Assembly (NCBI RefSeq): GCF_006345805.1
Contig: NC_043013.1
Span: 40,362,001-40,426,000, forward strand
Source of the DNA: Octopus sinensis
Taxonomy: Eukaryota
Reading direction: 5' to 3'
Length of the DNA stretch: 64,000 nt
Shown: piece after piece, positions 1-51,480 of the stretch
Layout: each line of letters starts with the position of its first letter
Numbering within the stretch: the first letter of the stretch is position 1
The notes under the pieces: model-generated
What the model was told of the DNA's origin: nothing
Databases searched by the model: none
The model's input: the letters and a program-made list of their open reading frames with translations, nothing else
Made by a program: the position numbers and the translations under genes

Positions 1-3000
1 CAGTTGTAGTAATTTCTGGCAACTTTGTAGTTGACGCCTTAGTTGTATATTGAGTTGTAGTTTGATCAGTAATTAGTTTTTCACTGGTAGTAGTGTGTTC
101 TGTTGTTGCTGAAGGAATTGTTGTTTGTGGTGCTGTATACAGTGTTGTAGCAACGATCGTTGTTGGTTCATCTTTGGCTCGAGTAGACAGAGATGGTTGT
201 TCTGTAGTTGAGGTGAGAGGTGGTGTAGTCTCTGTTGTTTGAATATCTGTGAATTCTGTTGTGCTTTCAACAGTTGGTGTATGAATGTGTGTTGTTTTAG
301 GAATTTGAGAAGTAGACTTCTTTGTTTCCGGAGGAATTTGACTCGTCGAAGTAATCTTGGTTGTTGTGGATGTTATATTTTGTGTCAGGATTTCTGGTGT
401 GGTTGCTGTTGTTATAATTTCTGGCAACTTTGTAGTTGACGCCTCAGGTGTATATTGGTGTGTAGTTTGATCAGTTTTAATTTTTTCACTGGTAGTAGTG
501 TGTTCTGTTGTTGCTGAAGGAATTGTTGTTTGTGGTGCTGTCTGCAGTTTTGTAGCAACGAGCGTTGTTGGGACATCCTTTGACTCGAGTAGACAGAGAT
601 GGTTGTTTTGTAGTTGAGGTGAGAGGTGGTGTAGTCTCTGTTGTAAGAATATCTGTGAATTGTGTTGTGCTTTCAGTCGTTGGTGTGTGAATGTGTGTTG
701 TTTGAGGAATTTGAGAAGTAGATTCCTTTGTTTCCGGAGAAATTTGACTCGTCGAAGTAATCATGGTTGTTGTGGATGTTATATTTTGCGTAAGGAATTC
801 TTGGTGTTGTTTCTGTTGTAGTAATTTCTGGCATCTTTGTAGTTGATTCCTCAGTTGTATATTGAGTGGTAGTTTGATCAGTTATTAGCTTTTCACTGGT
901 AGTAGTGTGTTCTGTTGTTGCTGAAGGAATTGTTGTTTGTGGTGCTGTATGCGGGTTGTAGCAACGAGCGTTGTTGGTACATCTTTGGCTCGAGTAGACA
1001 GAGATGGTTGTTTTGCAGTTGAGGTGAGAGGTGGTGTAGCCTCTTTTGTTAGAATATCTGTGACTTCTGTTTTGCTTTCAACAGTTGGTGTGTGAATGTG
1101 TGTTGTTTGAGGAATTTGAGAAGTAGATTTCTTTCTTTGTGTCCGGAGAATTGACTCGTCGAAGTAATCTGGGTTGTTGTGGATGTTATATTTTGCGTAA
1201 GGAATTCTGGTGTGGTTTCTGTTGTTGTAATTCCTGGCAACTTTGTAGTTGACGCCTCAGTTGTATATTGAGTGGTAGTTTGATCAGTTATTAGTTTTTC
1301 ACTGGTAGTAGTGTGTTTTGTTGTTGCTGAAGGAATTGTTGTTTGTGGTGCTGTATGCAGTGTTGTAGCAAAGATCGTTGTTGGTTCATCTTTGGCTCGA
1401 GCAGACAGAGATGGTTGTTCTGTAGTTGAGGTGAGAGGTGGTGTAGTCTCTGTTGTTAGAATATCTGTGAATTCTGTTGTGCTTTCAACAGTTGGTGTGT
1501 GAATGTGTGTTGTTTTTGAGGAATTTGAGAAGTAGATTCCTTTGTTTCCGGAGAATTTGACTCGTCGAAGTAATCATGGTTGTTGTGGATGTTATATTTG
1601 CGTGAGGAATTCTGGTGTGGTTTCAGTTGTAGTAATTTCTGGCAACTTTGTAGTTGACGCCTCAGTTGTATATTGAGTGTTAGTTTCATCAGTATTGGTT
1701 TTTCACTGGTAGTAGTGTGTTCTGTTGTTGCTGAAGGAATTGTTGTTTGTGGTGCTGTATGCAGTTTTGTAGCAACGAGCGTTGTTGGGTCACCTTTGAC
1801 TCGAGTAGACAGAGATGGTTGTTCTGTAGCTGAGGTGAGAGGTGGTGTGTCTCTGTTGTTGAATATCTGTGAATTGTGTTGTGCTTTCAACAGTTGGTGT
1901 GTGAATGTGTGTTGTTTGAGGAATTTGAGCAGTAGATTTCTCTGTTTCCGGAGGAATTTGACTCGTCGAAGTAATCTGGGTTGTTGTGGATGTTATATTT
2001 TGCGTAAGGAATTCTGGTGTGGTTTCTGTTGTTGTAATTTCTGGCAACTTTGTAGTTGACGTCTCAGTTGTATATTGAGTGGTAGTTTGATCAGTTATTA
2101 GTCTTTCACTGGTAGTAGTGTGTTCTGTTGTTGCTGAAGGAATTGTTGTTTGTGGTGCTGTATGCACTGTTGTAGCAACGAGCGTTGTTGGTACATCTTT
2201 GGCTCGAGTAGACAGAGATGGTTGTTCTGTAGTTGAGGTGAGAGGTGGTGTAGTTTCTGTTGTAAGAATATCTGTGAATTGTGTTGTGCTTTCAGTCGTT
2301 GGTGTGTGAATGTGTGTTGTTTGAGGAATTTGAGAAGTAGACTCCTTTGTTTCCGGAGAAATTTGACTCGTCGAAGTAATCAGGGTTGTTGTGGATGTTA
2401 TATTTTGCGTAAGGAATTTTGGTATTGTTTCTGTTGTAGTAATTTCTGGCATCTTTGTAGTTGATTCCTCAGTTGTATATTGAGTGGTAGTTTGATCAGT
2501 TATTAGCTTTTCACTGGTAGTAGTGTGTTCTGTTGTTGCTGAAGGAATTGTTGCTTGTGGTGCTGTATGCAGTGTTGTAGCAACGAGCGTTGTTGGTACA
2601 TCTTTGGCTCGAGTAGACAGAGATGGTTGTTTTGCAGTTGAGGTGAGAGGTGGTGTAGCCTCTTTTGTTAGAATATCTGTGACTTCTGTTGTGCTTTCAA
2701 CAGTTGGTGTGTGAATGTGTGTTGTTTGAGGAATTTGAGAAGTAGATTTCTTTGTTTCCGGAGGAATTCGACTTGTCGAAGTAATCTGGGTTGTTGTGGA
2801 TGTTATATTTTGCGTAAGGAATTCTGGTGTGGTTTCTGTTGTTGTAATTCCTGGCAACTTTGTAGTTGACGCCTCAGTTGTATATTGAGTGGTAGTTTGA
2901 TCAGTTATTAGTCTTTCACTGGTAGTAGTGTGTTCTGTTGTTCCTGAAGGAATTGTTGTTTGTGGTGCTGTATGCACTGTTGTTGGAACGAGCGTTGTTG

Positions 3001-6000
3001 GTACATCTTTGGCTCGAGTAGACAGAGATGGTTGTTCTGTAGTTGAGGTGAGAGGTGGTGTAGTCTCTGTTGTTAGAATATCTGTGAATTGTGTTGTGCT
3101 TTCAACAGTTGGTGTGTGAATGTGTGTCGTTTGAGAAATTTGAGAAGTAGATTTCTTTGTTTCAGGAGGCATTTTACTCGCCGAAGTAATCTGGGTCATT
3201 GTGGATGTTATATTTTGCGTAAGGAATTCTGGTGTGGTTTCAGTTGTAGTAATTTCTGGCAACTTTGTAGTTGACGTCTTAGTTGTATATTGAGTGGTAG
3301 TTTGATCAGTTATTAATTTTTCACTGGTAGTAGTGTGTTCTGTTGTTGCTGAAGGAATTGTTGTTTGTGGTGCTGTCTGCAGTTTTGTCGCAACGAGCGT
3401 TGTTGGGTCACCTTTGACTCGAGTAGACAGAGATGGTTGTTCTGTAGCTGAGGTGAGAGGTGGTGTAGTCTCTGTTGTTCGAATATCTGTGAATTGTGTT
3501 GTGCTGTCAACAGTTGGTGTGTGAATGTGTGTTGTTTGAGGAATTTGAGCAGTAGATTTCTTTGTTTCCGGAGGAATTTGACTCGTCGAAGTAATCTGGG
3601 TTGTTGTGGATGTTATATTTTGCGTAAGCAATTCTGGTGTGGTTTCTGTTGTTGTAATTTCTGGCAACTTTGTAGTTGACGCCTTAGTTGTATATTGTGC
3701 GGTAGTTTGATCAGTTATTAGTCTTTCACTGGTAGTAGTGTGTTCTGTTGTTGCTGAAGGAATTGTTGTTTGTGGTGCTGTATGCACTGTTGTTGGAACG
3801 AGCGTTGTTGGTACATCTTTGGCTCGAGTAGACAGAGATGGTTGTTCTGTAGTTGAGGTGAGAGGTGGTGTAGTCTCTGTTGTAAGAATATCTGCGAATT
3901 TTGTTGTGCTTTCAGTCGTTGGTGTGTGAATGTGTGTTGTTTGAGGAATTTGAGAAGTAGATTCCTTTGTCTCCGGAGAAATTTGACTCGTCGAAGTAAT
4001 CAGGGTTGTTGTGGATGTTATATTTTGCGTAAGGAATTTTGGTGTTGTTTCTGTTGTAATTTCTGGCATCTTTGTAGTTGATTCCACAGTTGTATATTGA
4101 GTGGTAGTTTGATCAGTTATTAGCTTTTCACTGGTAGTAGTGTGTTCTGTTGTTGCTGAAGGAATTGTTTTTTGTGGTGCTGTATGCGGGGTTGGAGCAA
4201 CGAGCGTTGTTGGTATATCTTTGGCTCGAGTAGACAGAGATGGTTGTTTTGTAGTTGAGGTGAGAGGTGGCGTAGCCTCTTTTGTTAGAATATCTGTGAC
4301 TTCTGTTGTGCTTTCAACAGTTGGTGTGTGAATGTGTGTTGTTTGAGGAATTTGAGAAGTAGATTTCTTTGTTTCCCGAGGAATTTGACTCGTCGATGTA
4401 ATCTGGGTTGTTGTGGATGTTATATTTTGCGTAAGGAATTCTGGTGTGGTTTCTGTTGTTGTAATTTCTGGCAACTTTGTAGTTGACGCCTCAGTTGTAT
4501 ATTGAGTGGTAGTTTGATCAATTATTAGTTTTTCACTGGTAGTAGTGTGTTCTGTTGTTGCTGAAGGAATTGTTGTTTGTGGTGCTGTATGCACTGTTGT
4601 TGGAACGAGCGTTGTTGGTACATCTTTGGCTCGAGTAGACAGAGATGGTTGTTCTGTAGTTGAGGTGAGAGGTGGTGTAGTCTCTGTTGTTAGAATATCT
4701 GTGAATTGTGTTGTGCTTTCAACAGTTGGTGTATGAATGTGTGTTGTTTTAGGAATTTGAGAAGTAGATTCTTTGTTTCCGGAGGAATTTGACTCGTCGA
4801 AGTAATCTGGTTGTTGTGGATGTTATATTTTGCGTAAGGATTCTGGTGTGGTTGCTGTTGTTATAATTTCTGGCAACTTTGTAGTTGACGCCTCAGGTGT
4901 ATATTGTGTGGTAGTTTGATCAGTTATTAATTTTTCACTGGTAGTAGTGTGTTCTGTTGTTGCTGAAGGAATTGTTGTTTGTGGTGCTTTCTGCAGTTTT
5001 GTAGCAACGAGCGTTGTTGGGACACCTTTGACTCGAGTAGACAGAGATGGTTGTTCTGTAGTTGAGGTGAGAGGTGGTGTAGTCTCTGTTGTAAGAATAT
5101 CTGTGAATTGTGTTGTGCTTTCAGTCGTTGGTGTGTGAATGTGTGTTGTTTGAGGAATTTGAGAAGTAGATTCCTTTGTTTCCGGAGAAATTTGACTCGT
5201 CGAAGTAATCATGGTTGTTGTGGATGTTATATTTTGCGTAAGGAATTTTGGTGTTGTTTCTGTTGTAGTAATTTCTGGCATCTTTGTAGTTGATTCCTCA
5301 GTTGTATATTGAGTGGTAGTTTGATCAGTTATTAGCTTTTCACTGGTAGTAGTGTGTTCTGTTGTTGCTGAAGGAATTGTTTTTTGTGGTGCTGTATGCG
5401 GGGTTGTAGCAACGAGCGTTGTTGGTACATCTTTGGCTCGAGTAGACAGAGATGGTTGTTTTGCAGTTGAGGTGAGAGGTGGTGTAGCCTCTTTTGTTAG
5501 AATATCTGTGACTTCTGTTTTGCTTTCAACAGTTGGTGTGTGAATGTGTGTTGTTTGAGGAATTTGAGAAGTAGATTTCTTTGTGTCCGGAGGAATTCGA
5601 CTTGTCGAAGTAATCTGGGTTGTTGTGGATGTTATATTTTGCGTAAGGAATTCTGGTGTGGTTTCTGTTGTTGTAATTCCTGGCAACTTTGTAGTTGACG
5701 CCTCAGTTGTATATTGAGTGGTAGTTTGATCAGTTATTAGTCTTTCACTGGTAGTAGTGTGTTTTGTTGTTGCTGAAGGAATTGTTGTTTGTGGTGCTGT
5801 ATGCAGTGTTGTAGCAAAGATCGTTGTTGGTTCATCTTTGGCTCGAGCAGACAGAGATGGTTCTTCTGTAGTTGAGGTGAGAGGTGGTGTAGTCTCTGTT
5901 GTTAGAATATCTGTGAATTGTGTTGTGCTTTCAACAGTTGGTGTGTGAATGTGTGTTGTTTGAGAAATTTGAGAAGTAGATTTCTTTGTTTCAGGAGGCA

Positions 6001-9000
6001 TTTTACTCGTCGAAGTAATCTGGGTCATTGTGGATGTTATATTTTGCGTAAGGAATTCTGGTGTGGTTTCTGTTGTAGTATTTCTGGCAACTTTGTAGTT
6101 GACGCCATAGTTGTATATTGAGTGGTAGTTTGATCAGTTATTAGTTTTTCACTGGTAGTAGTGTGTTTTGTTGTTGCTGAAGGAATTGTTGTTTGTGGTG
6201 CTGTATGCAGTGTTGTAGCAAAGATCGTTGTTGGTTCATCTTTGGCTCGAGCAGACAGAGATGGTTGTTCTGTAGTTGAGGTGAGAGGTGGTGTAGTCTC
6301 TGTTGTTTGAATATCTGTGAATTCTGTTGTGCTTTCAACGGTTGGTGTATAAATGTGTGTTGTTTTAGGAATTTGAGAAGTAGACTTCTTTGTTTCCGGA
6401 GGAATTTGACTCATCGAAGTAATCTTGGTTGTTGTGGATGTTATATTTTGCGTAAGGAATTCTGGTGTGGTTCCTGTAGTAATTTCTGGCAACTTTGTAG
6501 TTGACGCCTCAATTGTATATTGTGTGGTAGTTTGATCAGTTATTAGTTTTTCATTGGTAGTAGTGTGCTCTGTTGTTGCTGAAGGAATTGTTGTTTGTGG
6601 TGCTGTATGCGGGGTTGTAGCAACGAGCGTTGTTGGGAAATCTTTGACTCGAGTAGACAGAGATGGTTGTTCTGTAGCTGAGGTGAGAGGTGGTGTAGTC
6701 TCTGTTGTTACAATATCTGTGACTTCTGTTGTGCTTTCAGCAGTTGGTGTGTGAATGTGTGTTGTTTGAGGAATTTGAGAAGTAGATGTCTTTGTTTCCG
6801 AAGGAATTTGACTCGTCGATGTAATCTGGGTCGTTGTGGATGTTACATTTTGCGTAAGCAATTCTGGTGTGGTTTCTGTTGTAGTAATTTCTGGCAACTT
6901 TGTAGTTGACGCCTCAGTTGTATATTGAGTGGTAGTTTGATCAGTTATTAGTTTTTCACCGGTAGTAGTGTGTTCTGTTGTTGCTGAAGGAATTGATGTT
7001 TGTGGTGCTGTATGCACTGTTGTTGGAACGAGCGTTGTTGGTACATCTTTGGCTCGAGTAGACAGAGATGGTTGTTCTGTAGTTGAGGTGAGAGGTGGTG
7101 TAGTCTCTGTTGTTGAATATCTGTGAATTGTGTTGTGCTTTCAACAGTCGTTGTGTATGAATGTGTGTTGTTTTAGGAATTTGAGAAGTAGACTTCTTTG
7201 TTTCCGGAGGAATTTGACTCGTCGAAGTAATCTTGGTTGTTGTGGATGTTATATTTTGCGTAAGCAATTCTGGTGTGGTTTCTGTTGTTGTAATTTCTGG
7301 CAACTTTGTAGTTGACGCCTCAGTTGTATATTGTGTGGTAGTTTGATCAGTTATTTGTCTTTCACTGGTAGTAGTGTGTTCTGTTGTTGCTGAAGGAATT
7401 GTTGTTTGTGGTGCTGTATGCAGTGTTGTAGCAACGAGCGTTGTTGGTACATCTTTGGCTCGAGTAGACAGAGATGGTTGTTCTGTAGTTGAGGTGAGAG
7501 GTGGTGTAGTCTCTGTTGTAAGAATATCTGCGAATTTTGTTGTGCTTTCAGTCGTTGGTGTGTGAATGTGTGTTGTTTGAGGAATTTGAGAAGTAGATTC
7601 CTTTGTTTCCGGAGAAATTTGACTCGTCGAAGTAATCAGGGTTGTTGTGGATGTTATATTTTGCGTCAGGAATTTTGGTGTTGTTTCTGTTGTAGTAATT
7701 TCTGGTATCTTTGTAGTTGATTCCACAGTTGTATATTGAGTGGTAGTTTGATCAGTTATTAGCTTTTCACTGGTAGTAGTGTGTTCTGTTGTTGCTGAAG
7801 GAATTGTTGTTTGTGGTGCTGTATGCGGGGTTGTAGCAACGAGCGTTGTTGGTATATCTTTGGCTCGAGTAGACAGAGATGGTTGTTTTGTAGTTGAGGT
7901 GAGAGGTGGCGTAGCCTCTTTTGTTAGAATATCTGTGACTTCTGTTGTGCTTTCAACAGTTGGTGTGTGAATGTGTGTTGTTTGAGGAATTTGAGAAGTA
8001 GATTTCTTTGTTTCCCGAGGAATTTGACTCGTCGATGTAATCTGGGTTGTTGTGGATGTTATATTTTGCGTAAGGAATTCTGGTGTGGTTTCTGTTGTTG
8101 TAATTCCTGGCAACTTTGCAGTTGACGCCTCAGTTGTATATTGAGTGGTAGTTTGATCAGTTATTAGTTTTTCACTGGTAGTAGTGTGTTTTGTTGTTGC
8201 TGAAGGAATTGTTGTTTGTGGTGCTGTATGCAGTGTTGTAGCAAAGATCGTTGTTGGTTCATCTTTGGCTCGAGCAGACAGAGATGGTTGTTCTGTAGTT
8301 GAGGTGAGAGGTGGTGTAGTCTCTGTTGTTAGAATATCTGTGAATTCTGTTGTGCTTTCAACAGTTGGTGTGTGAATGTGTGTTGTTTGAGGAATTTGAG
8401 AAGTAGATTCCTTTGTTTCCGGAGAAATTTGACTCGTCGAAGTAATCATGGTTGTTGTGGATGTTATATTTTGCGTAAGGAATTCTGGTGTGGTTTCAGT
8501 TGTAGTAATTTCTGGCAACTTTGTAGTTGACGCCTCAGTTGTATATTGAGTGGTAGTTTCATCAGTTATTGGTTTTTCACTGGTAGTAGTGCTTTCTGTT
8601 GTTGCTGAAGGAATTGTTGTTTGTGGTGCTGTATGCAGTTTTGTAGCAACGAGCGTTGTTGGTACATCTTTGGCTCGAGTAGACAGAGATGGTTGTTCTG
8701 TAGTTGAGGTGAGAGGTGGTGTAGTCTCTGTTGTTTGAATATCTGTGAATTGTGTTTTGCTTTCAGTCGTTGGTGTATGAATGTGTGTTGTTTTAGGAAT
8801 TTGAGAAGTAGACTTCTTTGTTTCCGGAGGAATTTGACTCGGCGAAGTAATCTTGGTTGTTGTGGATGTTATATTTTGCGTAAGGAATTCTGGTGTGGTT
8901 TCTGTTGTTGTAATTTCTGGCAACTTTGTAGTTGACGCCTCAGTTGTATATTGTGTGGTAGTTTGATCAGTTATTAATTTTTCACTGGTAGTAGTGTGTT

Positions 9001-12000
9001 CTGTTGTTGCTGAAGGAATTGTTGTTTGTGGTGCTGTCTGCAGTTTTGTAGCAACGAGCGTTGTTGGGTCACCTTTGACTCGAGTAGACAGAGATGGTTG
9101 TTCTGTAGCTGAGGTGAGAGGTGGTGTAGTCTCTGTTGTTCGAATATCTGTGAATTGTGTTGTGCTTTCAACAGTTGGTGTGTGAATGTGTGTTGTTTGA
9201 GGAATTTGAGCAGTAGATTTCTCTGTTTCCGGAGGAATTTGACTCGTCGAAGTAATCTGGGTTGTTGTGGATGTTATATTTTGCGTAAGGAATTCTGGTG
9301 TGGTTTCTGTTGTTGTAATTTCTGGCAACTTTGTAGTTGACGTCTCAGTTGTATATTGAGTGGTAGTTTGATCAGTTATTAGTCTTTCACTGGTAGTAGT
9401 GTGTTCTGTTGTTGCTGAAGGAATTGTTGTTTGTGGTGCTGTATGCACTGTTGTAGCAACGAGCGTTGTTGGTACATCTTTGGCTCGAGTAGACAGAGAT
9501 GGCTGTTCTGTAGTTGAGGTGAGAGGTGGTGTAGTTTCTGTTGTAAGAATATCTGTGAATTGTGTTGTGCTTTCAGTCGTTGGTGTGTGAATGTGTGTTG
9601 TTTGAGGAATTTGAGAAGTAGACTCCTTTGTTTCCGGAGAAATTTGACTCGTCGAAGTAATAAGGGTTGTTGTGGATGTTATATTTTGCGTCAGGAATTT
9701 TGGTGTTGTTTCTGTTGTAGTAATTTCTGGCATCTTTGTAGTTGATTCCACAGTTGTATATTGAGTGGTAGTTTGATCAGTTATTAGCTTTTCACTGGTA
9801 GTAGTGTGTTCTGTTGTTGCTGAAGGAATTGTTGATTGTGGTGCTGTATACAGTGTTGTAGCAACGATCGTTGTTGGTTCATCTTTGGCTCGAGTAGACA
9901 GAGATGGTTGTTCTGTAGTTGAGGTGAGAGGTGGTGTAGTCTCTGTTGTTTGAATATCTGTGAATTCTGTTGTGCTTTCAACAGTTGGTGTATGAATGTG
10001 TGTTGTTTTAGGAATTTTAGAAGTAGACTTCTTTGTTTCAGGAGGAATTTTACCTCGTCGAAGTAATCTGTGTCATGTGTGGATGTTATATTTTGCGTAA
10101 GGAATTCTGGTGTGGTTTCAGTTGTAGTAATTTCTGGCAACTTTGTAGTTGACGCCTCAGTTGTATATTGAGTTGGTAGTTTGATCAGTAATTAGTTTTT
10201 TTCACTGGTAGTAGTGTGTTCTGTTGTTGCTGAAGGAATTGTTGTTTGTGGTGCTGTATGCAGTGTTGTAGCAACGAGCGTTGTTGGTTCATCTTTGGCT
10301 CGAGTAGACAGAGATGGTGTTCTGTAGTTGAGGTGAGAGGTGGTGTAGTCTCTGTTGTTTGAATATCTGTGAATTCTGTTGTGCTTTCAACAGTTGGTGT
10401 ATGAATGTGTGTTGTTTTAGGAATTTGAGAAGTAGACTTCTTTGTTTCCGGAGAATTTGACTCGGCGAAGTAATCTGGTTGTTGTGGATGTTATTTTGCG
10501 TAAGGATTTCTGGTGTGGTCTGTTGTTATAATTTCTGGCAACTTTGTAGTTGACGCCTCAGGTGTATATTGTGTGGTAGTTTGATCAGTTGTATAATTTT
10601 TATTTTTGTTATTGTTTTTTTATTTTAGCACTGGTAGTAGTGTGTTCTGTTGTTGCTGAAGGAATGTTGTTTTGGTGCTGTCTGCAGTTTTGTAGCAACG
10701 AGCGTTGTTGGGACACTTTGACTCGAGTAGACAGAGATGGTTGTTCTGTAGTTGAGGTGAGAGGTGGTGTAGTCTCTGTTGTTAGAATATCTGTGATTGT
10801 GTTGTGCTTTCAGTCGTTGGTGTGTGAATGTGTGTTGTTTGAGGAATTTGAGAAGTAGATTCCTTTGTTTCCGGAGAAATTTGACTCGTCGAAGTAATCA
10901 TGGTTGTTGTGGATGTTATATTTTGCGTAAGGAATTTTGGTGTTGTTTCTGTTGTAGTAATTTCTGGCATCTTTGTAGTTGATTCCTCAGTTGTATATTG
11001 AGTGCTAGTTTGATCAGTTATTAGCTTTTCACTGGTAGTAGTGTGTTCTGTTGTTGCTGAAGGAATTGTTGTTTGTGGTGCTGTATGCGGGGTTGTAGCA
11101 ACGAGCGTTGTTGGTACATCTTTGGCTCGAGTAGACAGAGATGGTTGTTTTGCAGTTGAGGTGAGAGGTGGTGTAGTCTCTGTTGTTTGAATATCTGTGA
11201 ATTGTGTTGTGCTTTCAGTCGTTGGTGTATGAATGTGTGTTGTTTTAGGAATTTGAGAAGTAGACTTCTTTGTTTCCGGAGGAATTTGACTCGGCGAAGT
11301 AATCTTGGTTGTTGTGGATGTTATATTTTGCGTAAGGAATTCTGGTGTGGTTTCTGTTGTTGTAATTTCTGGCAACTTTGTAGTTGACGCCTCAGTTGTA
11401 TATTGTGTGGTAGTTTGATCAGTTATTAATTTTTCACTGGTAGTAGTGTGTTCTGTTGTTGCTGAAGGAATTGTTGTTTGTGGTGCTGTCTGCAGTTTTG
11501 TAGCAACGAGCGTTGTTGGGTCACCTTTGACTCGAGTAGACAGAGATGGTTGTTCTGTAGCTGAGGTGAGAGGTGGTGTAGTCTCTGTTGTTCGAATATC
11601 TGTGAATTGTGTTGTGCTTTCAACAGTTGGTGTGTGAATGTGTGTTGTTTGAGGAATTTGAGCAGTAGATTTCTCTGTTTCCGGAGGAATTTGACTCGTC
11701 GAAGTAATCTGGGTTGTTGTGGATGTTATATTTTGCGTAAGGAATTCTGGTGTGGTTTCTGTTGTTGTAATTTCTGGCAACTTTGTAGTTGACGTCTCAG
11801 TTGTATATTGAGTGGTAGTTTGATCAGTTATTAGTCTTTCACTGGTAGTAGTGTTTCTGTTGTTGCTGAAGGAATTGTTGTTTGTGGTGCTGTATGCACT
11901 GTTGTTAGCAACGAGCGTTGTTGTTACATCTTTGGCTCGAGCAGACAGAGATGGTTGTTCTGTAGTTGAGGTGAGAGGTGGTGTAGTTTCTGTTGTAAGA

Positions 12001-29900: not shown

Positions 29901-32900
29901 GGTGTGCCTGTTCGTGTGGTTGTTTCTGGAGTCTTTTCAGTCGATGTGAATGTGGTAGCTTCAGTTGTAGTTTTGTGAGAGTGTGGCAGTTCAGTGACAG
30001 TCGTATGTTCTGCAGTTGAGGAAGCAATAGTTGTTTCAGTTCGTGTACTCACTGTGGGAACAGAAATTGTGGTGGGCATAGATGTTTGTACTTCTTCGGC
30101 TAGAGTTGTTAGAGATGGTAGTTTTGTTGTCGCTGTTAGAGGTTCTGCAGTGTGAGTTGTAATGATTTCTTTAGGTTGTGTTGTTGTTTCAGTAGTAGGT
30201 GTTAAAAGATATGTTGTTGTAGGAAGTTGGGAAGTTGTCTTCTTTGTTTCTTTTTGAATTTGTGTTGTTGATGCAATGTGTGCAGTTGTGTCCGTGACAG
30301 GTGCTGTAATCATTTCTGGTGTGTCTGTTTGTGTGGTTGTTTCTGGAGTCTTTTCAGTCGATGTGAATGTGGTAGATTCTGTTGTAGTTTTGTGAGTGCG
30401 TGGCAGTTCAGTGACAGTCGTATGTTCTGCAGTTGAGGAAGCAATAGTTGTTGGAGTTGGTGTACTCTCTGTGGGAGCAGAAATTGTGGTGGGCATAGAT
30501 GTTTCTACTTCTTCAGCTAGTGTTGTTAGAGATGGTAGTTTTGTTGTCGCTGTTAGAGGTTCTGCAGTGTGAGTTGTAAGAATTTCTTCGGGTTGTGTTG
30601 TTGTTTCAGTAGTAGGTGTTATAAAATGTGTTGTTGTATGAAGTTGGGAAGTTGTCTTATCTGTTTCTTTTTGAATTTGCGTTGTTGATGCGATGTGGGC
30701 AGTTGTGTCCGCGACAGGTGCTGTAATCATTTCTGGTGTGCCTGTCTGTGTGGTTGTTTCTGGAGTCTTTACAGTCGATGTGAATGTGGTAGCTTCAGTT
30801 GTAGTTTTGTCAGTGCGTGGCAGTTCAGTGACAGTCGTATGTTCTGAAGTTGAGGAAGCAATAGTAGTTTGAGTTGGTGTACTCACTGTGGGAGCAGAAA
30901 TTGTGGTGCGCATAGATGTTTCTACTTCTTCGCATAGTGTTGTTAGGGATGGTAGTTTTGTTGTCGCTGTTATGGCTTCTTCAGTGTGAGTTGTAATAAT
31001 TTCTTCAGGTTGTGTTGTTGTTTCAGTCGTAGGTGTTATAAGATGTGTTGTTGTAGGAAGTTGGGTTGTTGTTTTCTCTGTTTCTTTTTGAATTTGAGTT
31101 GTTGATGCAATGTGTGCAGTTGTGTCCGTGACAGGTGCTGTAATCATTTCTGGTGTGCCTGTTTGTGTGGTTGTTCCTGGAGTCTTTTCGGTGGATGTGA
31201 ATGTGGTAGCTTCAGTTGTAGTTTTGTCAGTGCGTGGCATTTCAGTGACAGTCGTTTGTTCTGCAGTTGAGGAAGCAATAGTTGTTTGTGTTGGTGTACT
31301 CACTGTGGGAGCAGAAATTGTGGTGGGCATAGATGTTTGTACTTCTTCGGCTAGAGTTGTTAGAGATGGTAGTTTTGTTGTCGCTGTTAGAGGTTCTGCA
31401 GTGTGAGTTGTAATGATTTCTTTAGGTTGTGTTGTTGTTTCAGTAGTAGGTGTTAAAAGATGTTTTGTTGTAGGAAGTTGGGAAGTTGTCTTCTCGGTTT
31501 CTGTTTGAATTTGTGTTGTTGATGCAATGTGTGCAGTTGTGTCCGTGACAGGTGCTGTAATCATTTCTGGTGTGCCTGTTTGTGTGGTTGTTCCTGGAGT
31601 CTTTTCGGTGGATGTGAATGTGGTAGCTTCAGTTGTAGTTTTGTCAGTGCGTGGCATTTCAGTGACAGTCGTATGTTCTGCAGTTGAGGAAGCAATAGTT
31701 GTTTGAGTTGGTGTACTCACTGTGGGAGCAGAAATTGTTGTGGGCATAGATGTTTCTACTTCTTCGGCTAGTGTTGTTAGGGATGGTAGTTTTGTTGTCG
31801 CTGTTATGGGTTCTGCAGTGTGAGTTTTAAGAATTTCTTCAGGTTGTGTTGTTTTTTCAGTAGTAGGTGTTATAAGATGTGTTGTTGTAGGAAGTTGGGT
31901 ACTTGTCTTTTCTTTTTCTTTTTGAATTCGTGTTGTTGATGCAATGTTTGCAGTTGTGTCCGTGACAGGTGCTGTAATCATTTCTGGTGTGCCTGTTTGT
32001 GTGGTTGTTTCTGGAGTCCTTTCAATCGATGTGAATGTGGTAGCTTCAGTTGTAGTTTTGTCAGTGCGTGGCAGTTCAGTGACAGTCGTATGTTCTGCAG
32101 TTGAGGAAGCAATAGTTGTTTGAGTTGGTGTACTTACTTTGGGAGCAGAAATTGTGGTGGGCATAGATGTTTCTACTTCTTCGGCTAGAGTTGTTAGAGA
32201 TGGTAGTTTTGTTGTCACTGTTAGAGGTTCTGCAGTGTGAGTTGTAATAATAAATTCAGGTTGTGTTGTTGTTTCAGTAGTAGGTGTTAAAAGATGTGTT
32301 GGAAGTTGGGAAGTTGTCTTCTCGGTTTCTGTTTGAATTTGTGTTGTTGATGCAATGTGTGCAGTTGTGTCCGTGACAGGTGCTGTAATCATTTCTGGTG
32401 TGCCTGTTTGTGTGGTTGTTTCTGGAGTCTTTACAGTCGATGTGAATGTGGTAGCTTGAGTTGTAGTTTTGTGAGTGCGTGGCAGTTCAGTGACAGTCGT
32501 ATGTTCTGCAGTTGAGGAAGCAATAGTTGTTTGTGTTGGTATACTCAATGTGGGAGCAGAAATTGTGGTGGGCATAGATGTTTCTAGTGTTTTTATAGTG
32601 GGTGCTTTAGTTGTATACTGATTGCTAGTTTGAGTTGTGAGTGGTATTTTAGTCACATTGATGTGTTCTGTTGTCGATGAAGTAGTAGTCATGTTTTTTT
32701 TTGTGTGCATTTTGGTAGTGGTAAGTGTGGTTTGCATAGATGTTTGAACATATTCAGGTAGAGTTGAGAGCGTTGTTTTTTCAGCAGTTGTGTTGTTCGG
32801 CCATGGAATCTGAGGTGTTTGAACCTCTGTGAGTTGCGTTGTGCTTTCAACAGTAGATGTGTGAATGTGTGCTGTGTGAGGAAGTTTAGCAGTAGTTTCG

Positions 32901-34395
32901 TCAGTTTGTGTTTGAATGTGACTCATGGAAGTAATCTGTGTTGTATCTGTGATAGGTTGTGAAAGCAGTTTTGGTGTGCTTGATGGCGTAGTATTTTCTG
33001 GAGTCTTTTCTATTGATGAATGAGTTCTATACTTAGTCATAATTTGATCGGTGAGTGGTATTTCAGTGGCAGAAGTGTGATCTGTTGTTGATGAAGCAAT
33101 TGTTGTTTGAGTTACTACGTGTAGTTTGCTAGCAGTATCTGTGATTGGCATGGACGTTTGTACAACTTTAGCTAGAGTTGTTTGTTTGGTAGGTGTGGTG
33201 AGAAGTGGTGTAATCACTGTTGTTAGAATATCTCTGAGTTGTGTTGTATGTTCACCAATAGATGTGTGAACGTGTGTTATTTGAGGATGTTGGGAAGTTG
33301 ATTTCATAGTTTCTGTTTGAATTTGGCTTGTTGACGGAATGTGTGTTGTTGTGACTGTGATAGGTTTTGTAAGCAATTCTGGTGTGCTTCGTGGTGGAGT
33401 CATTATGAGAGTCTTTTCAGTTGATGCCTGAGTTGTATATTGCTGTTCACTTATAATGTTAGTGGGTGCTGTTTTGACATGATATTTATGAATTTGTGTG
33501 TATTCAGGTATTTTTTCTGTTTTATGTATATATTCTTGTGTAATTCCTTTTGTCGTTTGTCTTTTCATGTCATCTTGCTCTGTAATTCCTTGTATTTCTA
33601 TACTAGTGTGTGCTGTGTTTTGTAAAGATCCCTGTGTACTTACATTTTCTTTTGTGATATTAACATGCTCTTGAGTATGTGTTGTTATATTATTATATGA
33701 AATGGGTTTTTCTGTTATTGTTGTTATGTTCCTATGCACTATGGTAGTGTTTGGAGTGTTAAACTCTTTTATTTTTGTTATTTGGTTTGGGTGTGTCATT
33801 ACTGTGCTTGTGAATGATGTAAGGTGATCAACCATTTTGGTATCTGTTTCATTTTGTAATGTCTTATTCCAGTTTTTGTTGTATATCAATTCAGTTGTTT
33901 TATTCTGAAGTTGTGTTAATGTAGATTCTGTTGTATTCTCCTTGTGTTCCTTTGGTGTTGAATATGTTGTTACATTGTGTGTTAATTTTGTTTGTTGCAA
34001 GTTTGTATTTGTGTCTGTTAATACTGCGGTTGTGGTTTGTTTCATGGGTGTCTTTGTTATTTTATGTGTAGTTGTTATAAGTGTCATTACTGGTGTTGTA
34101 GTAAGTCTTTTAGAAGTTGTCATTGAAGGTGTAGCTTTCGATAGTGGTTTCTTTGTCACTGTTTGTTTAACCATTGGGAATGTTATGCTTGGCGTCAATG
34201 TTGTCAGGGTTTGTGTTTTGTCATCGTCACTTTTACCCCTGTGTTCCCTATTTTCAAATGTTAATGTAATTTCAGGTATTTGAGATGCTGTTGTAATTTC
34301 AGTTATTTTTTTTGATGAAAGTTGATAAAATATCTGTGATGTTACCTCAGGTATCCTTGCTGTAGTTGGTGCATATGCTGGGGTTGTCATCTTCT
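1..34395 (-). CDS. Giant PTS (Thr-rich) mucin-domain exon of a VWA-mucin gene; 3' end lies outside the window
   Basis: Minus-strand acceptor ttaatttttcttcag|AGAAGATGACAACC at 34396/34395. Long ORFs (1849, 797, 802, 2440, 931, 934 aa) all encode the same Thr/Ser/Pro/Glu repeats. Breaks between them are small indels inside repeat units or the N gap, with no intron-like sequence. Confidence 0.85.
16381..16632 (-). repeat. Perfect 18-bp minisatellite x14 encoding (TTTRRP)14
   Basis: Plus-strand unit tgttggtcgtcttgtggt repeated 14 times without mismatch, in frame within the 2440-aa ORF. Confidence 0.97.
17200..32585 (-). repeat. Coding tandem array A: 417-bp / 139-aa unit, ~36 copies (true number unknown because of the gap)
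   Basis: MPTTISAPT starts are 417 bp apart (27169, 26752). Unit: MPTTISAPTVSTPTQTTIASSTAEHTTVTELPRTDK...LAEEVETS. The last three units (17.2-18.3 kb) are diverged. Confidence 0.95.
24798..24897. other. Assembly gap (100 N placeholder) inside array A
   Basis: Run of exactly 100 N. Confidence 0.99.
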
Positions 34396-35149
34396 CTGAA
34401 GAAAAATTAAGATGTATATTAATGTATTTTCATATAATAATTTTTGCTTGAAGGAAGTTGCTAGAAGGAATGTCTTGCACTATTTAGTTTTACACATGTA
34501 AACTCTGACTTCAACTCTTTATTAAATTTAAACCAATATTACACAAGGACTGATTGAAGTAATTATATCCAATTTCCCTACAATACCAGGATTTATGATT
34601 AGCCTAACAAAATACATATGCATTTTTGTCAATTGAGAAACGTTTTTATTTAATTGACATTTTTCTAATGCAGATTTTTTAAAATTTCTAAATTTTATAA
34701 TTAGTCTGAAGATAAAGTACTTTTAGACTAAAGAATAAGAACAGCTGAATATATGTAAGTTTTTACTTTTTTAAGTTGATGGGGAAATATATGTAAAATC
34801 GAACTTTAACATTTTCTGAGAAGTATTGATTGGTTAAGTTTGTGTGATGCAGTAAAATTGACAATTTCTAGCTATGTAAAAGCAAATTTTATGGGAAGGA
34901 TATACAGACAGTTGATCTGCTCTGATATATTATTTATTTTATTAGCAGGTTAGAATTAAGCTTAAGCTTGCACAAAATTTCAAATGAAAACAGTGTAGTG
35001 TCAAACTAGATATAGTAAAGCAGTCATTCAAGCATTCTTCTCCATGGACCACTCATTATGTCCTCTTGTTTCTTATATAAAGATATTTAAAACTAAACCA
35101 AAATTTCTTCTTTTATCTTTGTAACAAACTTTAATCATTTTTAAAAATC

Positions 35150-35320
35150 ATTCATCATCATTATATGTCTGCTTTTCATGGTGACATGAATTGAACAAGT
35201 TGTCATGATCTAAATTTACAAAGTCATTTGGTTTGGTTTCTATGACTGGATGTCCTTCCTAATGTCAACCATGTTACATAGTGTTCTGGGTGCATTTTCT
35301 CATGGTAGAAACATTAAGTG
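35150..35320 (-). mobile_element. RTE-LINE 3' tail / RTE-related SINE fragment
   Basis: Reverse complement resembles the tails at 38880-39050 and 48780-48930 (ggatgtccttcctaatgtcaacc; catcatcat tail). Confidence 0.55.
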
Positions 35321-35808
35321 GGTTGAATAATCCTGAGTGAGACAATGCTATTATACTACACTATCTCTGCTCATTTAGTCAATAACTTTGCAGTGTGAAC
35401 AATAAGTGGGGGATGCCATGTTCACAGTGAATGTAAATTTGGAAAGGAACAGTGTTGGCAGAAGGGTCAGAAATAGTTATTTACGAGGTGGGAATAGGGG
35501 AGTAAATATAAGTATAGGAAGTCTTCAATAAATTAAGGGGTGTACATTTTCACATGTGACTGAGGAAAAGAGTTGGAGAGAAACAACAATGACATCAAAA
35601 TGAGAAAGGTAGAATGGATGATAAGATGGGCAAGAGTATATGAGGAATGGCAGAAGAGATGATTCAGAGGAGAGAAAGAGAGTGCTGGCTGGCAGGACAA
35701 GTCTGTGAAGTTAGAGTGTATTAGATGACCTAATGGAGTCTCATCCAATGACAAAGAAGCTTATGAATTAAATACTAAAAAATGTGACCTATTTCCCCTT
35801 CACTTTGC

Positions 35809-35897
<89 letters not shown>
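35809..35897. repeat. (TA)n microsatellite
   Basis: Near-perfect TA dinucleotide run. Confidence 0.95.
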
Positions 35898-37609
35898 TGA
35901 AGCAAACTGATTTTTCTTTTTTTCCCCCAAAGTTATGCATTTGTTCATCTGAATAGATTTTGGTGATATATACACTATGTTGAAGGGTTTTTGTAGTTGA
36001 GACAGTATAAGTTTTTTATCAAGCATTGATGTCTTCTCAAGACCTGTATGTATTCATATAGACAATTTCTGTCTCCATCCTCACACTAAGTACTCTTACT
36101 TAATAGGACTGTATATATATATAAATATATATATATATCCTATATGGATGAGTTTTTCCCCACACATCTCTGCTCACAGACTTGCAACCACATCATATTC
36201 TCTTCCTTTCTTTATTGTTAATGAAATTGTTATAATGTATATTAAGACCTCAATCCATTTATTTTGATCAACACTATAAATAAGGTTTTTTAAAAGAATA
36301 ATCTTTTTATTAAAAGAATAATGTTTTTATCCAGCCCACAAGATCTAGTTTATACTGCAATGTGGCACAAAATCAAACAAGTTTGACAGTTCTGCTGTAG
36401 GGAACAAGTCAGTTGGGTTTTGAACAGTTTTATTCCTGATAATGGCACTTATAAAAGTTCTCATTCAATGAATCATAGAACAAGGCAGTGCTATTAAATT
36501 TGTATAATTAGACTTATTTTATTTTAATTCATTAGTTTAAAGAGGAAAAGTCATGTCTATGACCTTAAATTAATTTAATTATCTATTATTATATGGAGGT
36601 AGTTGATCAAATACTAGGGTTCACAAGTAACAAGCAAGATATTACAGTGCATAGGTTGTGAGTTGGATATATCTTGAGATTCAGTGAGACACTTAAGGGA
36701 GTTGGGTTTTGATAAAAATGATTGAATAAATGGAATGAAGTGGCATCTATAGTGAAAAATATTGGAGCAGTAAAAACAGTAGAAGTAGAAAGAAAGACTA
36801 TACAATTGTTTTTATATGGGTTGGAAATTTTTATGATTAATTTTCTTTTGAACAGGGTCATTCGGAGTTGTGACAAAAGGAAGAATACAAGTATATTTTG
36901 TTGGTAGTAATAGTCTTATGCATATTATCTAAGTCAACATGTTTTACAGGAACATTCTTAGAAGATAAAAAACCAGTGTCATGTTGCAGAACTGACAATA
37001 AATAGCGTAAAATTGATCTTTCTAAAATGGAAGTCATATAGTGATACATTTCACAGCACAAAAACACACATATTCACTCCTACAATTTTATATTTATTAC
37101 TTCAGAAAATCATGAACATCACAACTTTTGATTTTCTTGACATAAAATACATTATTCTTGATTTTAGTGAATGATAAAGGTTAGGTATTTGAGCACTGCT
37201 CAAAATCTATCAATGAAGCAACTTGTAAGTTATGATTCCAGTTTGAAGGTTAGAAACTTATGTCTCTTCAAAAGTACTATATGAAAAAATAAAACTAGTA
37301 TTAATGCTACTGCTGTTGTTACTTTTACTCACATTGATATTATTTACATACTAAGAAATGTATAAATAAACTATGGATGTTACTTATCTCTAAAAATATA
37401 AATATATAACATGCTTTTTATACAGAAAACTGGATCTATGGATCTTATATTCTAAGCTTTGGAAATAATAAGATCTAAATGTTTTGCTGGAAACAAAAAT
37501 AGTTTGGACACACAAGTTTTAAATATTTGCCATAATTATCTTAAAATCTCATTTTATCATTGAAATTATTGGAGTGTCTGACAGGCAATCATTTTTTTAT
37601 ATATACAAG

Positions 37610-39058
37610 CCATGTACATGAATGTTGCCAGTAAGGTGATGGTTGGCAACGAGTGTAGCAATTAATTCAGTGTAGAGGTACGAGTTCACTAAGGATGAGT
37701 TCTCAGTCCCCTCTCGTTTATCCTAATCTTCCATGCCATAACAGAGGAATTCAAGACTGTCTGTCCCTGAGAGCTCCTCTTTGCTGATGATCTTATAGCT
37801 GAATCACTACATGACCTAGAGAAGACATTTCAGGTGTGGAAGTGAAGCCTTGAATCTAAGAGCCTTAGAGTTAATCTAGCAAAGACCAAATTCCTCCTAA
37901 GTAGGAAAACAAACAAATCACAAGTCTCTTCAGGAAAATGACCCTGCTCTATATGTAAGAAGGATGTTGGTAGAAACTCTATGCATTGTACCCAGTGCAA
38001 GCTTTGGACATATAACAGGTGTAGCAGTATCACAGGAAGGCTAACAGAAAAAATAATCTTTGTATGTGGCAAATGTGCAGTTACAGTAAGCATTAAATAT
38101 TTGCAGACAATAGACATCTTCAAATACCCAGGGAGATCCTTAGAAATAGTAGATAACTTCTGTTGCCTTGGCAACCAAGTTAGCAGTGGAGGAGGATGTT
38201 CTGAAAGTGTAGTTGCTAGAATAGGAATGAACTGGGTAAAGTTCTAAGAGCTTCTGTCTCTGTTGGTAACTAAGAACCTCTGTCTCAGAGTAAAAGGCAG
38301 ATTCTTTGATGCCTGTGTACATACAGCTATGCTACATGGCAGTGAAACATGGGCTGTGATTCTAGAGGACTTATAAAAGCTTGAAAAACATGAAGCTAGC
38401 ATGCTCCAATGGATGGGTAATGTCAATGTGCACGCATGACAGATTGATCTAAGAGAAAACTGGATTTAAGAGGCATCAGATGTTGTGTGTAAGAAAGAAG
38501 GCTGCATTGGTTTGGTTATGTGATGCATGTGGATGAGAACAGCTATGTAAAGAGTTGTCAATCTCTAATTGTGGGGACTGGGGGGAATCTGTGGAAGGGG
38601 TAGACGTAGGAAGATGTGGGATGAAGTATTAAGAAAAGATCTTCAGATGCTGAACCTCACTGAGGAAACGACAAGGGACTGGGAGTTGTGGTGATTTGCT
38701 GTACTTGAGAAGATGTGTCAAGATAAATAAAATTGTGGTCATCCATACATACAGGCAAATTCTTTGCAGGTGCCAGTGCCATGTAAAATGCACTTACACT
38801 GGTGCTGTGTAAACACCCTTGTGCCAGTGGTGCATAAATGCACCCATGCCAGTCACACGTAAAAAGCACCCAGCACACTTTGTAAAGTGGTTGGCTTTAG
38901 GAAGGGCATCCAGCTGTAGAAACCATGCCAAACAGAAAACTCAAGTCTGGACAGCTCCCTGGCTGGCAAACTCCTGTCAAACCAACCATCCCATGCCAGC
39001 ATAGAAAATGGATGTTAAACTATGATGGTGATGCTGCTGCTGAAGAAGATGATGAAGA
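37610..39058 (+). mobile_element. 5'-truncated, decayed RTE-clade LINE (RT C-terminal half, PHD-like insert, 3' UTR, GAT-rich tail)
   Basis: Decayed GVHQGSVLSP-like motif, ELLFADDL (RT YADD motif), CSICKKDVGRNSMHCTQCKLWT, LEIVDNFCCLG, AMLHGSETW, tail ccatgccagcatagaaaatggatgttaaactatgatggtgatg. Confidence 0.85.
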
Positions 39059-39644
39059 TTTTCCCAAAGAAACTCAGGCTATTAAATCATGTTTAAGAGC
39101 ATGCTAGTTATTTAAAGGATGGACAATTGCACTCGTTCTCATTGTTTAAAAAATCTTGGAAATTAAATTTCAAATTTGAAATGGCCTTCATGTAAATTCA
39201 ATTGTCATGGTATTACCAAAATTAGCTTCTTTTTGAAAGTTAAAAGGCCCTTAAGATCTTAAGAGAAGATAGCTATGCACAAAACTTATTATAATCTCTA
39301 TTTATCCAAGTTAATATCTTTTAGCTCAACCCCAAACCAAACATTGTTTTACATATGCTTTCTACTTCAATAATATTTTAATGTTAAAATGCTTTGCATT
39401 AGATATTGTTTATGAAATAAAATATGATTTGTATCTTTTTTAAATTTCACATCTGTTTGTAAGTTGTTTCACCTATATGAATAAAAAAAATACCAAGTGA
39501 GTATTTTTTGGACTTTTCAGTTTTACATGGACTTCTAATAGTAATTGTTCTTGCACTTTCTTTTTGGTAAAATATATCTAATTTATTTTAAAAAATAGAA
39601 TAATGGAGATTATATTTTTAAATGTGATAAAAAGGACTACTTAC

Positions 39645-40196
39645 TGACGTTAAAACTGATTGCAATCTGTTCAAGAGCTTTATAGCTTGGTACACGAACA
39701 ATTCCTTTCGGGTATGTACTGGCAATGTCCACTAATTCTTGCAAATCAACATTGTTTCCTACTCCAACAGAGTATGTATGAATGCCGGCATCCTTTAATT
39801 TCTGAGCTTTTCTTCTTGTTTCTAAACGATTGTCTGATGTTCCATCAGTGACAATAATAGCAACTTGGGGTCTTTCAGGTTGTGGATAAGGACGTTCAAA
39901 CATTTTCCTTGTAAGGTCCAAAGCATCAGCTGTGTTTGTCTGTCCCATTCGATAAGGAACATCTTTAATTGCATCTGATACAGCCCATCTATCTTTGTAT
40001 TTGTCGAGTGGTATGTCAACATGTGCCTTGTCGCTGTATGATACCACACCCATTTTTATTTGGCATGGCCCTTGTCCAATATCATAGTTTTTTGCAAAAT
40101 TATCAACAAATGACCGCAATCTGTTATAGTCTGGAGGCCAAATACTGCTAGAGGAGTCCAGAACAAATACAAAGTCTGCCACGTCTCCATAGCATT
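39645..40196 (-). CDS. von Willebrand factor type A (VWA) domain exon, 552 bp, phase 1-1
   Basis: Acceptor tttttttcttag|AATGCTATGGAGAC at 40197/40196. Translation CYGDVADFVFVLDSSSSIW...MGVVSYSD...GQTNTADAL...AIIVTDG...GVG: MIDAS DxSxS, T and D are all present. Donor gtaagt follows. Confidence 0.92.
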
Positions 40197-40619: not shown

Positions 40620-41811
<1,192 letters not shown>

Positions 41812-51180: not shown

Positions 51181-51480
51181 CTGTTTTAATGAGCCCACAT
51201 CTAATGAAGTAGCCATCTTATTGTTGGTGATCCCCATGAAAATCATGATATTCTCATTCATGTTTGAGATAACAACATTAAACATGTTTCACAAACTCAT
51301 CCCTCTTATGATGCTCTCCAGTATCCTCTTATTCTGTGGAATGGACAAGATGGGTGTCATTTCAATATTCCACAGATTGAACATACAACAAGAGAGCCAA
51401 TTACAAACCAAAAGGTGTGGTCAAATGACTTCAATTCTTACCAACTGATGTTAAGACCAGAACAATCAAGTCAATTACAC
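51181..51480 (+). mobile_element. Helitron Rep/helicase gene fragment (pseudogene)
   Basis: FNEPTSNEVAIL, then after a frameshift VGDPHENHDILIHV*DNNIKHVSQTHPSYDALQYPLILWNGQDG...KVWSNDFNSYQLMLR. This fits the Helitron NxPT..EVA / HxSYDxLQYPL motif. Confidence 0.75.

Follow-up and report, generated by a model that had tools for sequence, protein, structure and literature searches.

Very large mucin exons have been described in human long-read haplotypes, in which one central exon of MUC12 encodes up to 23,080 aa and the repeat exon of MUC4 measures 27.8 kb (PMC13345508). The copy number of such exons is hard to assemble and breaks of their ORFs by sequencing errors or indels are reported; the central exon of MUC19 shows no complete ORF in any long-read haplotype examined (PMC13345508). 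The spider glue gene AgSp1 needed long reads with short-read correction; its 42,270-bp coding sequence lies in two exons of ~21 kb each (PMC6553539). Mollusc mucus is already known to contain VWA proteins (PMC10475054).

We analysed a window of 64,000 nucleotides from Octopus sinensis (contig NC_043013.1; positions below are counted from the first base of the window). It probably holds the 5′ portion and the middle of a single very large Octopus minus-strand gene for a mucin-like O-glycoprotein, in which the breaks of the assembled frame would be technical and the true exon would span at least 34.4 kb. Since giant mucin exons and VWA proteins of mollusc mucus were both known before, the conceptual advance is small. 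The size of the exon had been considered exceptional in a preliminary description of this DNA, but human MUC12 alleles have larger exons (PMC13345508).

On the proposed reading the octopus gene, like MUC12, MUC4 and MUC16, would place a PTS domain of in-frame tandem repeats in one very large exon. It has no sequence homology to these three, which are of the SEA/EGF-type tethered kind, whereas the octopus gene carries a VWA at the N-terminal end; unlike those of the human mucins, its repeat units are as long as 135-139 aa and of two array types. Extracellular matrix VWA domains are a feature common to collagen VI alpha3 and PTMP1; these, however, are VWA arrays, with or without a collagen helix, whereas in the octopus a single VWA would precede >11,000 PTS residues. 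Proteins of the collagen VI, matrilin and PTMP1 type have several VWAs in tandem, whether or not a collagen triple helix or coiled coil accompanies them, in contrast with the one VWA exon found in the window. AgSp1 is comparable as an invertebrate secreted glycoprotein glue with extreme repetitive exons (PMC6553539), but is of a family unrelated to the octopus VWA-mucin.

The VWA domain exon (39645-40196, minus strand), as delimited by its Pfam match and splice sites, is 552 nt long with symmetrical phase 1-1. The PF00092 profile matches it with E = 4.5e-33 and 115 bits (cut-off 23.8), over profile positions 1-171 of 174. All MIDAS residues are present in the translation of the exon (D9-S11-S13, forming D-x-S-x-S, T82/T84 and D113), and the D-x-S-x-S, T and D are invariant in an alignment of four sequences (the window exon and P0001-P0003). 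The head is thus MIDAS-complete at the sequence level and is predicted to be metal-ion competent. The acceptor reads ttcttag/AATGC and the donor GTCA/gtaagt; both sites are kept in a second octopus species (L001), and the dN/dS of 0.12 between the window and that species indicates purifying selection on the exon. By sequence, its closest solved relatives are VWA domains of collagen VI alpha3 and mussel PTMP1 (PDB matches 9han_C, E = 8.4e-91 summed over seven domains, and 4cn8, E = 3.8e-25). No second VWA exon was found in the 64-kb window by tblastn.

The VWA exon is separated from the giant exon by a putative GT..AG intron of 5,249 nt (34396-39644, minus strand; donor gtaagt, acceptor ttaatttttcttcag), within which there are just short junk or TE-like ORFs. 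The giant-exon acceptor at 34395 reads ttcttcag/AGAAGATG, and the predicted join GTCA/AGAAGATG, in phase 1, reads ..N-V-K-K-M-T-T-P... The preliminary description had proposed a MIDAS-intact VWA exon and its canonical GT-AG, phase-1, in-frame join to the repeats; the exon is borne out by the Pfam match and the invariant MIDAS residues, and the join is compatible with the donor and acceptor as read.

This junction, predicted from genomic splice sites, could be wrong in several ways: the two exons might belong to separate genes, extra small exons might lie within the 5.2-kb intron, or the PTS exon might be entered from another upstream exon. The annotation of Octopus bimaculoides does have the VWA part and the PTS part as separate models (P0008 and P0006, respectively), and an ATG sits 5 nt inside the PTS exon. 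We nevertheless consider a wrong junction rather unlikely. The VWA and PTS exons are on one strand, 5.2 kb apart, with canonical GT..AG and both in phase 1; P0008 stops without a stop codon exactly at the VWA donor and is therefore an incomplete model; a protein beginning MTTPAYAP has no signal peptide, a poor fit for a 50% PTS polypeptide; and the frame 5′ of 34395 is shut within 37 nt, in a stretch that is the polypyrimidine tract. A signal-peptide exon was sought across 40.2-64 kb, where a strict scan gave none and a relaxed scan gave 12 weak candidates, most of them antisense in a retrotransposon remnant; the candidate at 51499-51442 alone looks plausible. No VWD-like ORF was found across 34.4-64 kb, and upstream of the PTS exon the window contains no domain other than the VWA.

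The repeat body lies entirely on the minus strand. The giant exon starts with a non-arrayed, Thr-rich region of degenerate repeat units (32587-34395) in an open frame of 28844-34429, and the O. bimaculoides repeat is matched by one of these units (32829-33442). A 417-bp (139-aa) array follows, divided by an N gap, for which TRF gave an upstream block of 18.5 copies that are 97% identical to the consensus (24898-32586) and a downstream block of 18.1 copies, the last three units being ~17-20% diverged (17252-24797), hence at least 36.6 copies in total. A fully open linker of degenerate units (14928-17251), part of the open frame 12640-20085, contains an 18-bp (TTTRRP) sub-array of 16 copies (16379-16671, TRF). 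The last part is a 405-bp (135-aa) array of 36.8 copies (1-14927, TRF), which leaves the window at base 1. The 405 unit is homologous to the 417 unit by unit-to-unit protein alignment over 135 aa, and the sequence is Thr-rich and of even composition, free of foreign inserts, all the way from 34395 to base 1. Homologues of the repeats, searched with the 2,482-aa open frame, were compositional matches only (horseshoe crab, shrimp), with no orthologous repeat protein.

The encoded polypeptide is acidic, and its 8,557 translated residues are 33.7% T, 8.3% S and 8.1% P (P+T+S = 50%). Cys makes up ~0.1% of the repeats and is absent from the 2,482-aa open frame. This composition, half P, T and S and essentially Cys-free, supports the mucin-like character of the VWA-headed giant gene first proposed. 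Gel-forming mucins and von Willebrand factor are likewise very large secreted PTS glycoproteins forming networks, if the octopus protein is secreted, as we infer. The N-terminal VWD-C8-TIL of the MUC2/5AC/5B/6/19 type was not found within the 64-kb window, and neither it nor CysD or cystine-knot domains were found among the window domains, in the repeats or in the C-terminal part of the O. bimaculoides model P0007. Since these domains were not found and Cys is so rare, disulfide polymerisation of the gel-forming type is not expected.

Arrays of this kind could also be a non-coding A/C-rich minisatellite, open in one frame simply through its base composition. The repeat strand does have a strong bias (GC skew = 0.47), and synonymous and non-synonymous changes among the repeat copies are near random expectation, with a dN/dS-like ratio near 1; selection is therefore visible only as stop avoidance and composition. 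Yet each consensus unit has exactly one stop-free frame, a Thr-rich one, of the three on the minus strand, the others having 6-7 and 4 stops, and the periods of 417, 405 and 18 bp are all multiples of 3. The non-arrayed parts (~4.1 kb; 32587-34395 and 14928-17251) are free of frame breaks, staying open over 600 and 775 codons, and the O. bimaculoides repeats run in frame into unique C-terminal sequence at only 73% nucleotide identity. A minisatellite origin can hardly be right on this evidence, and we treat the arrays as coding.

As assembled, the frame entered at 34395 reaches its first in-frame stop at 28843, after ~1,850 codons, and the longest stop-free stretch is 2,482 codons (12640-20085). 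When the three frames are traversed at minimum cost, at least 26 frame switches or stop read-throughs are required, and alignment of every unit to its consensus gave 87 indels, 74 of them with a length not divisible by 3. The preliminary description had the frame continuing over 34,395 bp uninterrupted, which the assembled sequence contradicts; of the one coding exon of 34.4 kb or more that it proposed, the uniform Thr-rich repeat body up to base 1 stands, while its frame is broken as assembled. Small introns that restore the frame were rejected, the breaks being 1-4-nt indels inside otherwise consensus-identical units.

The indels are clustered, with 20 in 28849-28095 (the worst frameshift cluster, in the upstream 417-bp block), 9 in 12667-11854, 14 in 10796-10054 and 14 in 1860-457, and the units in the clusters do not have elevated substitution divergence. 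Most non-3n indels (64 of 74, 86%) are private to one copy, as against the 70-84% of substitution cells that are common to several copies; against a technical origin, a few frameshift indels recur at an identical unit offset in two copies. One-base deletions outnumber one-base insertions (44 versus 12), and 34 of the 56 one-base events are homopolymer length changes, where 41-44% would be expected. Atypical for a one-base consensus error is a 27-bp A-rich insertion at ~10602-10628, which brings TAA codons into the consensus frame.

The gap within the 417-bp array (24798-24897) was examined by the repeat register of its flanks. The pre-gap sequence ends at consensus offset 198 and the post-gap sequence resumes at offset 176, a register overlap of 22 nt in which 3 positions mismatch. 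The run of 100 N is thus no measure of the gap but a placeholder, the true length missing being 417k-22. Dropping the 100 N and the 22 nt (122 nt) leaves both flanks in a shared frame, the single open consensus frame.

Read in consensus-guided frames, ~9,970 codons with ~1,290 substitutions contain 0 stops, where random placement gives ~35. Sharing through concerted evolution makes the variants non-independent and inflates such cell-based statistics, a problem addressed in part by counting each distinct variant once (16.7 nonsense expected, 0 observed). Four apparent nonsense cases are double changes that avoid a stop (e.g. GAA>TTT or TAT). Downstream of the 27-bp insertion 11.1 nonsense changes were expected and 0 observed. 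These counts indicate that the reading frame is selected along the whole array.

If the frameshifts were real, the exon would be in decay or partly pseudogenised; translation would end at 28843, giving the VWA and ~1,850 aa of PTS, or at some other early stop, and the ~29 kb left over would be an untranslated relic. The sequence as given has the frame breaks and non-3n indels that such an exon would show, and an insertion with in-frame TAA; there is human precedent in the central exon of MUC19, with an ORF-disrupting indel in CHM13 (PMC13345508). Neutral decay, however, should yield nonsense substitutions and frameshifts alike, evenly spread, whereas past 28843 there are 0 nonsense substitutions against 31 expected, and the indels are single-copy, deletion-biased, homopolymer-enriched and clustered, with substitutions common to several copies. 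The frame is perfectly intact in the linker at 14928-17251 and through 7.4 kb around it. We judge real decay to be improbable; the most likely source of the ~74 frameshifting indels and of the N gap is faulty long-read assembly of a near-identical tandem array. The evidence favours errors, short of proof, and in the same way favours a single giant exon, which requires the ~74 indels to be assembly errors.

The orthologue in O. bimaculoides is spread over three unconnected models: UPI0006954E1A (P0008), UPI0006959731 (P0006) and LOC106879988/XP_014785251.1 (P0007). P0008 carries the VWA exon at 94.6% amino acid identity up to its donor; the 146 aa at its start match nothing in the 64-kb window and are probably spurious or encoded outside it. 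P0006 begins at an internal ATG and has 81% amino acid identity to the start of the giant exon (the 32587-34395 region). P0007 begins in 405-type repeats, which are open in that independent assembly, and continues to the C-terminus; it is these terminal repeats of LOC106879988 that were compared with the 405-bp array of the window to give the nucleotide identity stated above. The O. bimaculoides array adjoins N gaps, into which it is collapsed in that assembly, whereas the window shows the array itself, with the tail and last exon outside. The fragmentation in annotation that had been anticipated is thus seen in this species, as three models around assembly gaps.

Past the repeats, the orthologue has a Ser/Thr-rich tail and then one last exon with a small globular domain, which together correspond to residues 330-862 of XP_014785251.1. 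Pfam gave no match to the C-terminal part of P0007 at E <= 1. The domain was tried as a second VWA and rejected (hhalign probability 22%, E = 9e-4), being weakly VWA-like at best, and a single-sequence AF2 model of it (pLDDT 43) was too poor for a fold search.

We propose that the VWA exon, with its complete MIDAS, is joined in phase 1 to a giant exon that would encode a Cys-free acidic PTS polypeptide, 34% Thr, with 139-aa units, a degenerate linker and then 135-aa units. Dense O-glycosylation of the repeats would make it an extended, hydrated bottle-brush, which the VWA head, via its MIDAS, might tether or cross-link to the matrix or a partner, in contrast to the disulfide-linked VWD/cystine-knot polymerisation of gel-forming mucins. 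With the errors corrected, the gene could have one coding exon, 34.4 kb or longer, that ranks among the largest known in invertebrates. The product could be a mega-mucin without Cys, unstructured except for a MIDAS-competent VWA head and a small domain at the C-terminus, and cephalopods could build a mucus or matrix network by metal-dependent VWA tethering instead of VWD/cystine-knot disulfides; we put this full picture forward as a speculative one that is unlikely to hold in every part.

The locus illustrates compactly how frameshifts are left by long-read assembly in coding arrays of near-identical tandem units. It also illustrates how, even where reads are lacking, the lack of nonsense substitutions allows coding constraint to be told apart from technical indels. 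Cephalopod annotations split such genes into unrelated 'uncharacterized threonine-rich' fragments, and in proteomic or expression work on octopus skin, mucus or glands the protein will therefore be mis-assigned or missed. As a giant PTS protein with a VWA head and no Cys, the product would be a candidate for a structural role in the mucus or matrix of octopuses.

An ORF at 39637-40182 gives a full-length hit to the Pfam VWA profile (E = 4.5e-33). Among proteins of solved structure, mussel PTMP1 and the N-terminal VWA domains of collagen VI alpha3 come closest to it. The MIDAS residues (D-x-S-x-S, T and D) are all present and are invariant across relatives. The exon itself spans 40196..39645 on the minus strand (552 nt), is phase 1 at either end, and is bounded by an acceptor (ttcttag before AATGC) and a donor (gtaagt after GTCA). 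The giant exon starts at 34395, preceded by ttaatttttcttcag, and the join translates as ...N-V-K-K-M-T-T-P.... The junction with the Thr-rich exon is thus exactly as the preliminary description gave it, and from these signals we infer that the VWA exon is spliced to the giant exon. In another octopus, a 2-kb genomic contig with 90% nucleotide identity has retained the acceptor and the donor of the VWA exon, from which it differs by 20 synonymous and 10 non-synonymous changes; the resulting dN/dS of 0.12 marks a functional coding exon.

Throughout window positions 1-34,000 the plus strand carries a constant, extreme bias (GC skew ~+0.47, AT skew ~-0.38) that stops at ~34.4 kb. Tandem Repeats Finder splits this region, in minus-strand reading, into four parts: a non-arrayed Thr-rich start (32587-34395), a 417-bp array (17252-32586) with a 100-N gap inside (24798-24897), a 2.3-kb linker (14928-17251), and a 405-bp array of 36.8 copies (3-14927) running off the window. 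In either consensus unit a single frame is free of stops, encoding 139 residues (53 Thr) in the 417 unit and 135 residues (49 Thr) in the 405 unit; the two remaining same-strand frames hold 6-7 and 4 stops. An alignment of the two units extends over 135 residues; both arrays thus descend, with divergence, from a single ancestral unit. Pooled repeat composition (T 33.7%, S 8.3%, P 8.1%, E 8.3%, C 0.1%, W 0) is typical of a PTS (mucin) domain, here one that lacks cysteines. Within the linker, an 18-bp sub-array encoding (TTTRRP) x16 (16379-16671, minus strand) forms a basic stretch rich in Arg in a PTS protein that is acidic elsewhere. Next to the linker, three 417-bp units (17252-18300, minus strand) are 17-20% off consensus and still open, against 1-6% for other units, which is the homogenisation gradient expected at an array edge.

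The assembled sequence does not contain the uninterrupted 34,395-bp frame reported earlier. Reading on from 34395, the first stop comes at 28843; no open stretch is longer than 2,482 codons (12640-20085), and a dynamic-programming path through the three frames gets to base 1 only with 26 or more frame switches or stop read-throughs. When all units are aligned, with wrap-around, to their consensus, 87 indels appear, 74 of them not multiples of three (44 of -1, 12 of +1, 8 of -2, 6 of +2 and 4 of +4). One break is explained by the gap: its upstream flank ends at consensus offset 198 and its downstream flank restarts at 176, a 22-nt register overlap that includes three mismatches. The run of 100 N stands as a placeholder for a missing length of 417k-22, with k not fixed. 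Dropping the 100 N and the overlap (122 nt) puts both flanks in the single open consensus frame, so the frame change here is a placeholder artefact.

Several independent features indicate that the other frame breaks are probably technical. No stop occurs in ~9,970 consensus-guided codons bearing ~1,290 substitutions; the same substitution types placed randomly would yield ~35, variants spread by concerted evolution being non-independent, and 16.7 would be expected with each distinct variant counted once. The four variants that alone would create a stop always have a second change in the codon (e.g. GAA to TTT or TAT). The deficit persists when only codons downstream of the 28843 stop (31 expected) or of 10600 (11.1 expected; simulation minimum not below 5) are counted. 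Variants common to several copies make up 70-84% of substitution cells, whereas 64 of the 74 frameshifting indels are confined to one copy. One-base deletions outnumber insertions (44 versus 12), and homopolymer length changes account for 61% of one-base events versus 41-44% expected. Indels cluster strongly (28849-28095, 12667-11854, 10796-10054 and 1860-457) in units whose substitution divergence is not elevated; stretches of 2.4-7.4 kb are clean, and non-arrayed sequence is open throughout. There are also frame-preserving indels (3, 6 and 27 nt), one 3-nt deletion being common to three copies, as expected for real variation under a selection filter. The substitutions look selected and the indels do not, a combination that residual consensus errors of long reads in a tandem array explain best, and judged from the assembled sequence the indels are probably such errors. 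In contrast to the one-base indels, a 27-bp A-rich insertion within one 405-bp unit (~10602-10628, minus strand), which places TAA codons in the consensus frame, is no typical base-level consensus error and looks like AAAAACTAATAAC-tract slippage. At 29399-29453 (minus strand) compensated indels (-1, +2, -2, -2; net -3) replace ~26 consensus residues with 25 off-frame residues (..TDTLHTLHHQQLNSNRNRRHIQLP..) and create no stop.

Window positions 40200-64000 hold mostly the decayed remains of mobile elements: LTR-retrotransposon gag, protease and integrase fragments (42.0-44.2 kb, plus), a DDE_3 fragment (~51.97-52.16 kb, plus), zf-RVT (52.9-53.3 kb, minus) and a mariner Transposase_1 (59352-60014, minus). 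An (AG)52 microsatellite lies at 40685-40789. No signal-peptide exon was established amid the transposable-element debris upstream of the VWA exon within the window. A short ATG-initiated ORF (51442-51499, minus), MKIYLTCVIDLIVLVLTSV, adjoins a DDE_3 transposase fragment and is followed by a phase 1 GTAAGA donor; it is a possible candidate for that exon.

The non-arrayed start of the giant exon, used as query, found two Octopus bimaculoides models. P0006, 81% identical to it, begins at an internal ATG (MTTPAYAPTT). P0007 (XP_014785251.1, 'uncharacterized protein LOC106879988') starts within 405-type repeats and continues through a unique Ser/Thr-rich tail and an intron to a 193-aa C-terminal domain. 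In the genomic locus of P0007 (L003), an N gap immediately precedes the repeat exon and more gaps lie upstream, which leaves the array unassembled; the 1-kb repeat stretch that is present is open and shares 73% identity with the 405 units of the window and 65% with its 417 units. P0008, a 332-aa model in the cluster of the VWA ORF, ends stop-less exactly at the VWA donor, and its first 146 residues have no match within the window. Together these models indicate one gene annotated as three unconnected pieces in O. bimaculoides, the fragmentation that had been anticipated. The last exon of the O. bimaculoides orthologue (L003 17851-18429; CM046617.1) encodes the 193-aa domain. This domain has a beta-alpha-beta pattern, lacks D-x-S-x-S and resembles VWA weakly and colinearly (hhalign probability 22%; single-sequence AlphaFold pLDDT 43); it may be a degenerate second VWA.

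The predicted gene product has a conserved MIDAS-type VWA as head on a Cys-free, acidic, Thr-rich polypeptide of >11,000 residues. By analogy with known PTS domains, dense O-glycosylation of the repeats would produce an extended hydrated brush, and the head, as in other VWA proteins, may bind a matrix or partner protein in a metal-dependent manner. VWD, CysD and cystine-knot modules are absent, which speaks against disulfide polymerisation of the mucin type. Mucins as a rule have giant exons that encode repeats: in human long-read haplotypes a single central exon yields MUC12 proteins of up to 23,080 aa, and MUC4 repeat exons measure 27.8 kb (PMC13345508). ORF breaks caused by errors or by real indels (MUC19) are a familiar problem in mucins (PMC13345508). 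With the larger MUC12 protein known and the frame broken as assembled, the proposal that this exon exceeds familiar human ones is neither secure nor a record. Spider AgSp1 has two exons of ~21 kb each (PMC6553539), snail mucus is known to contain VWA proteins (PMC10475054), and proteins with a VWA domain appear in skin-mucus proteomes of octopus (PMC11431876). Set beside these giant exons and mucus VWA proteins, the octopus locus is a poorly annotated addition to a known class.
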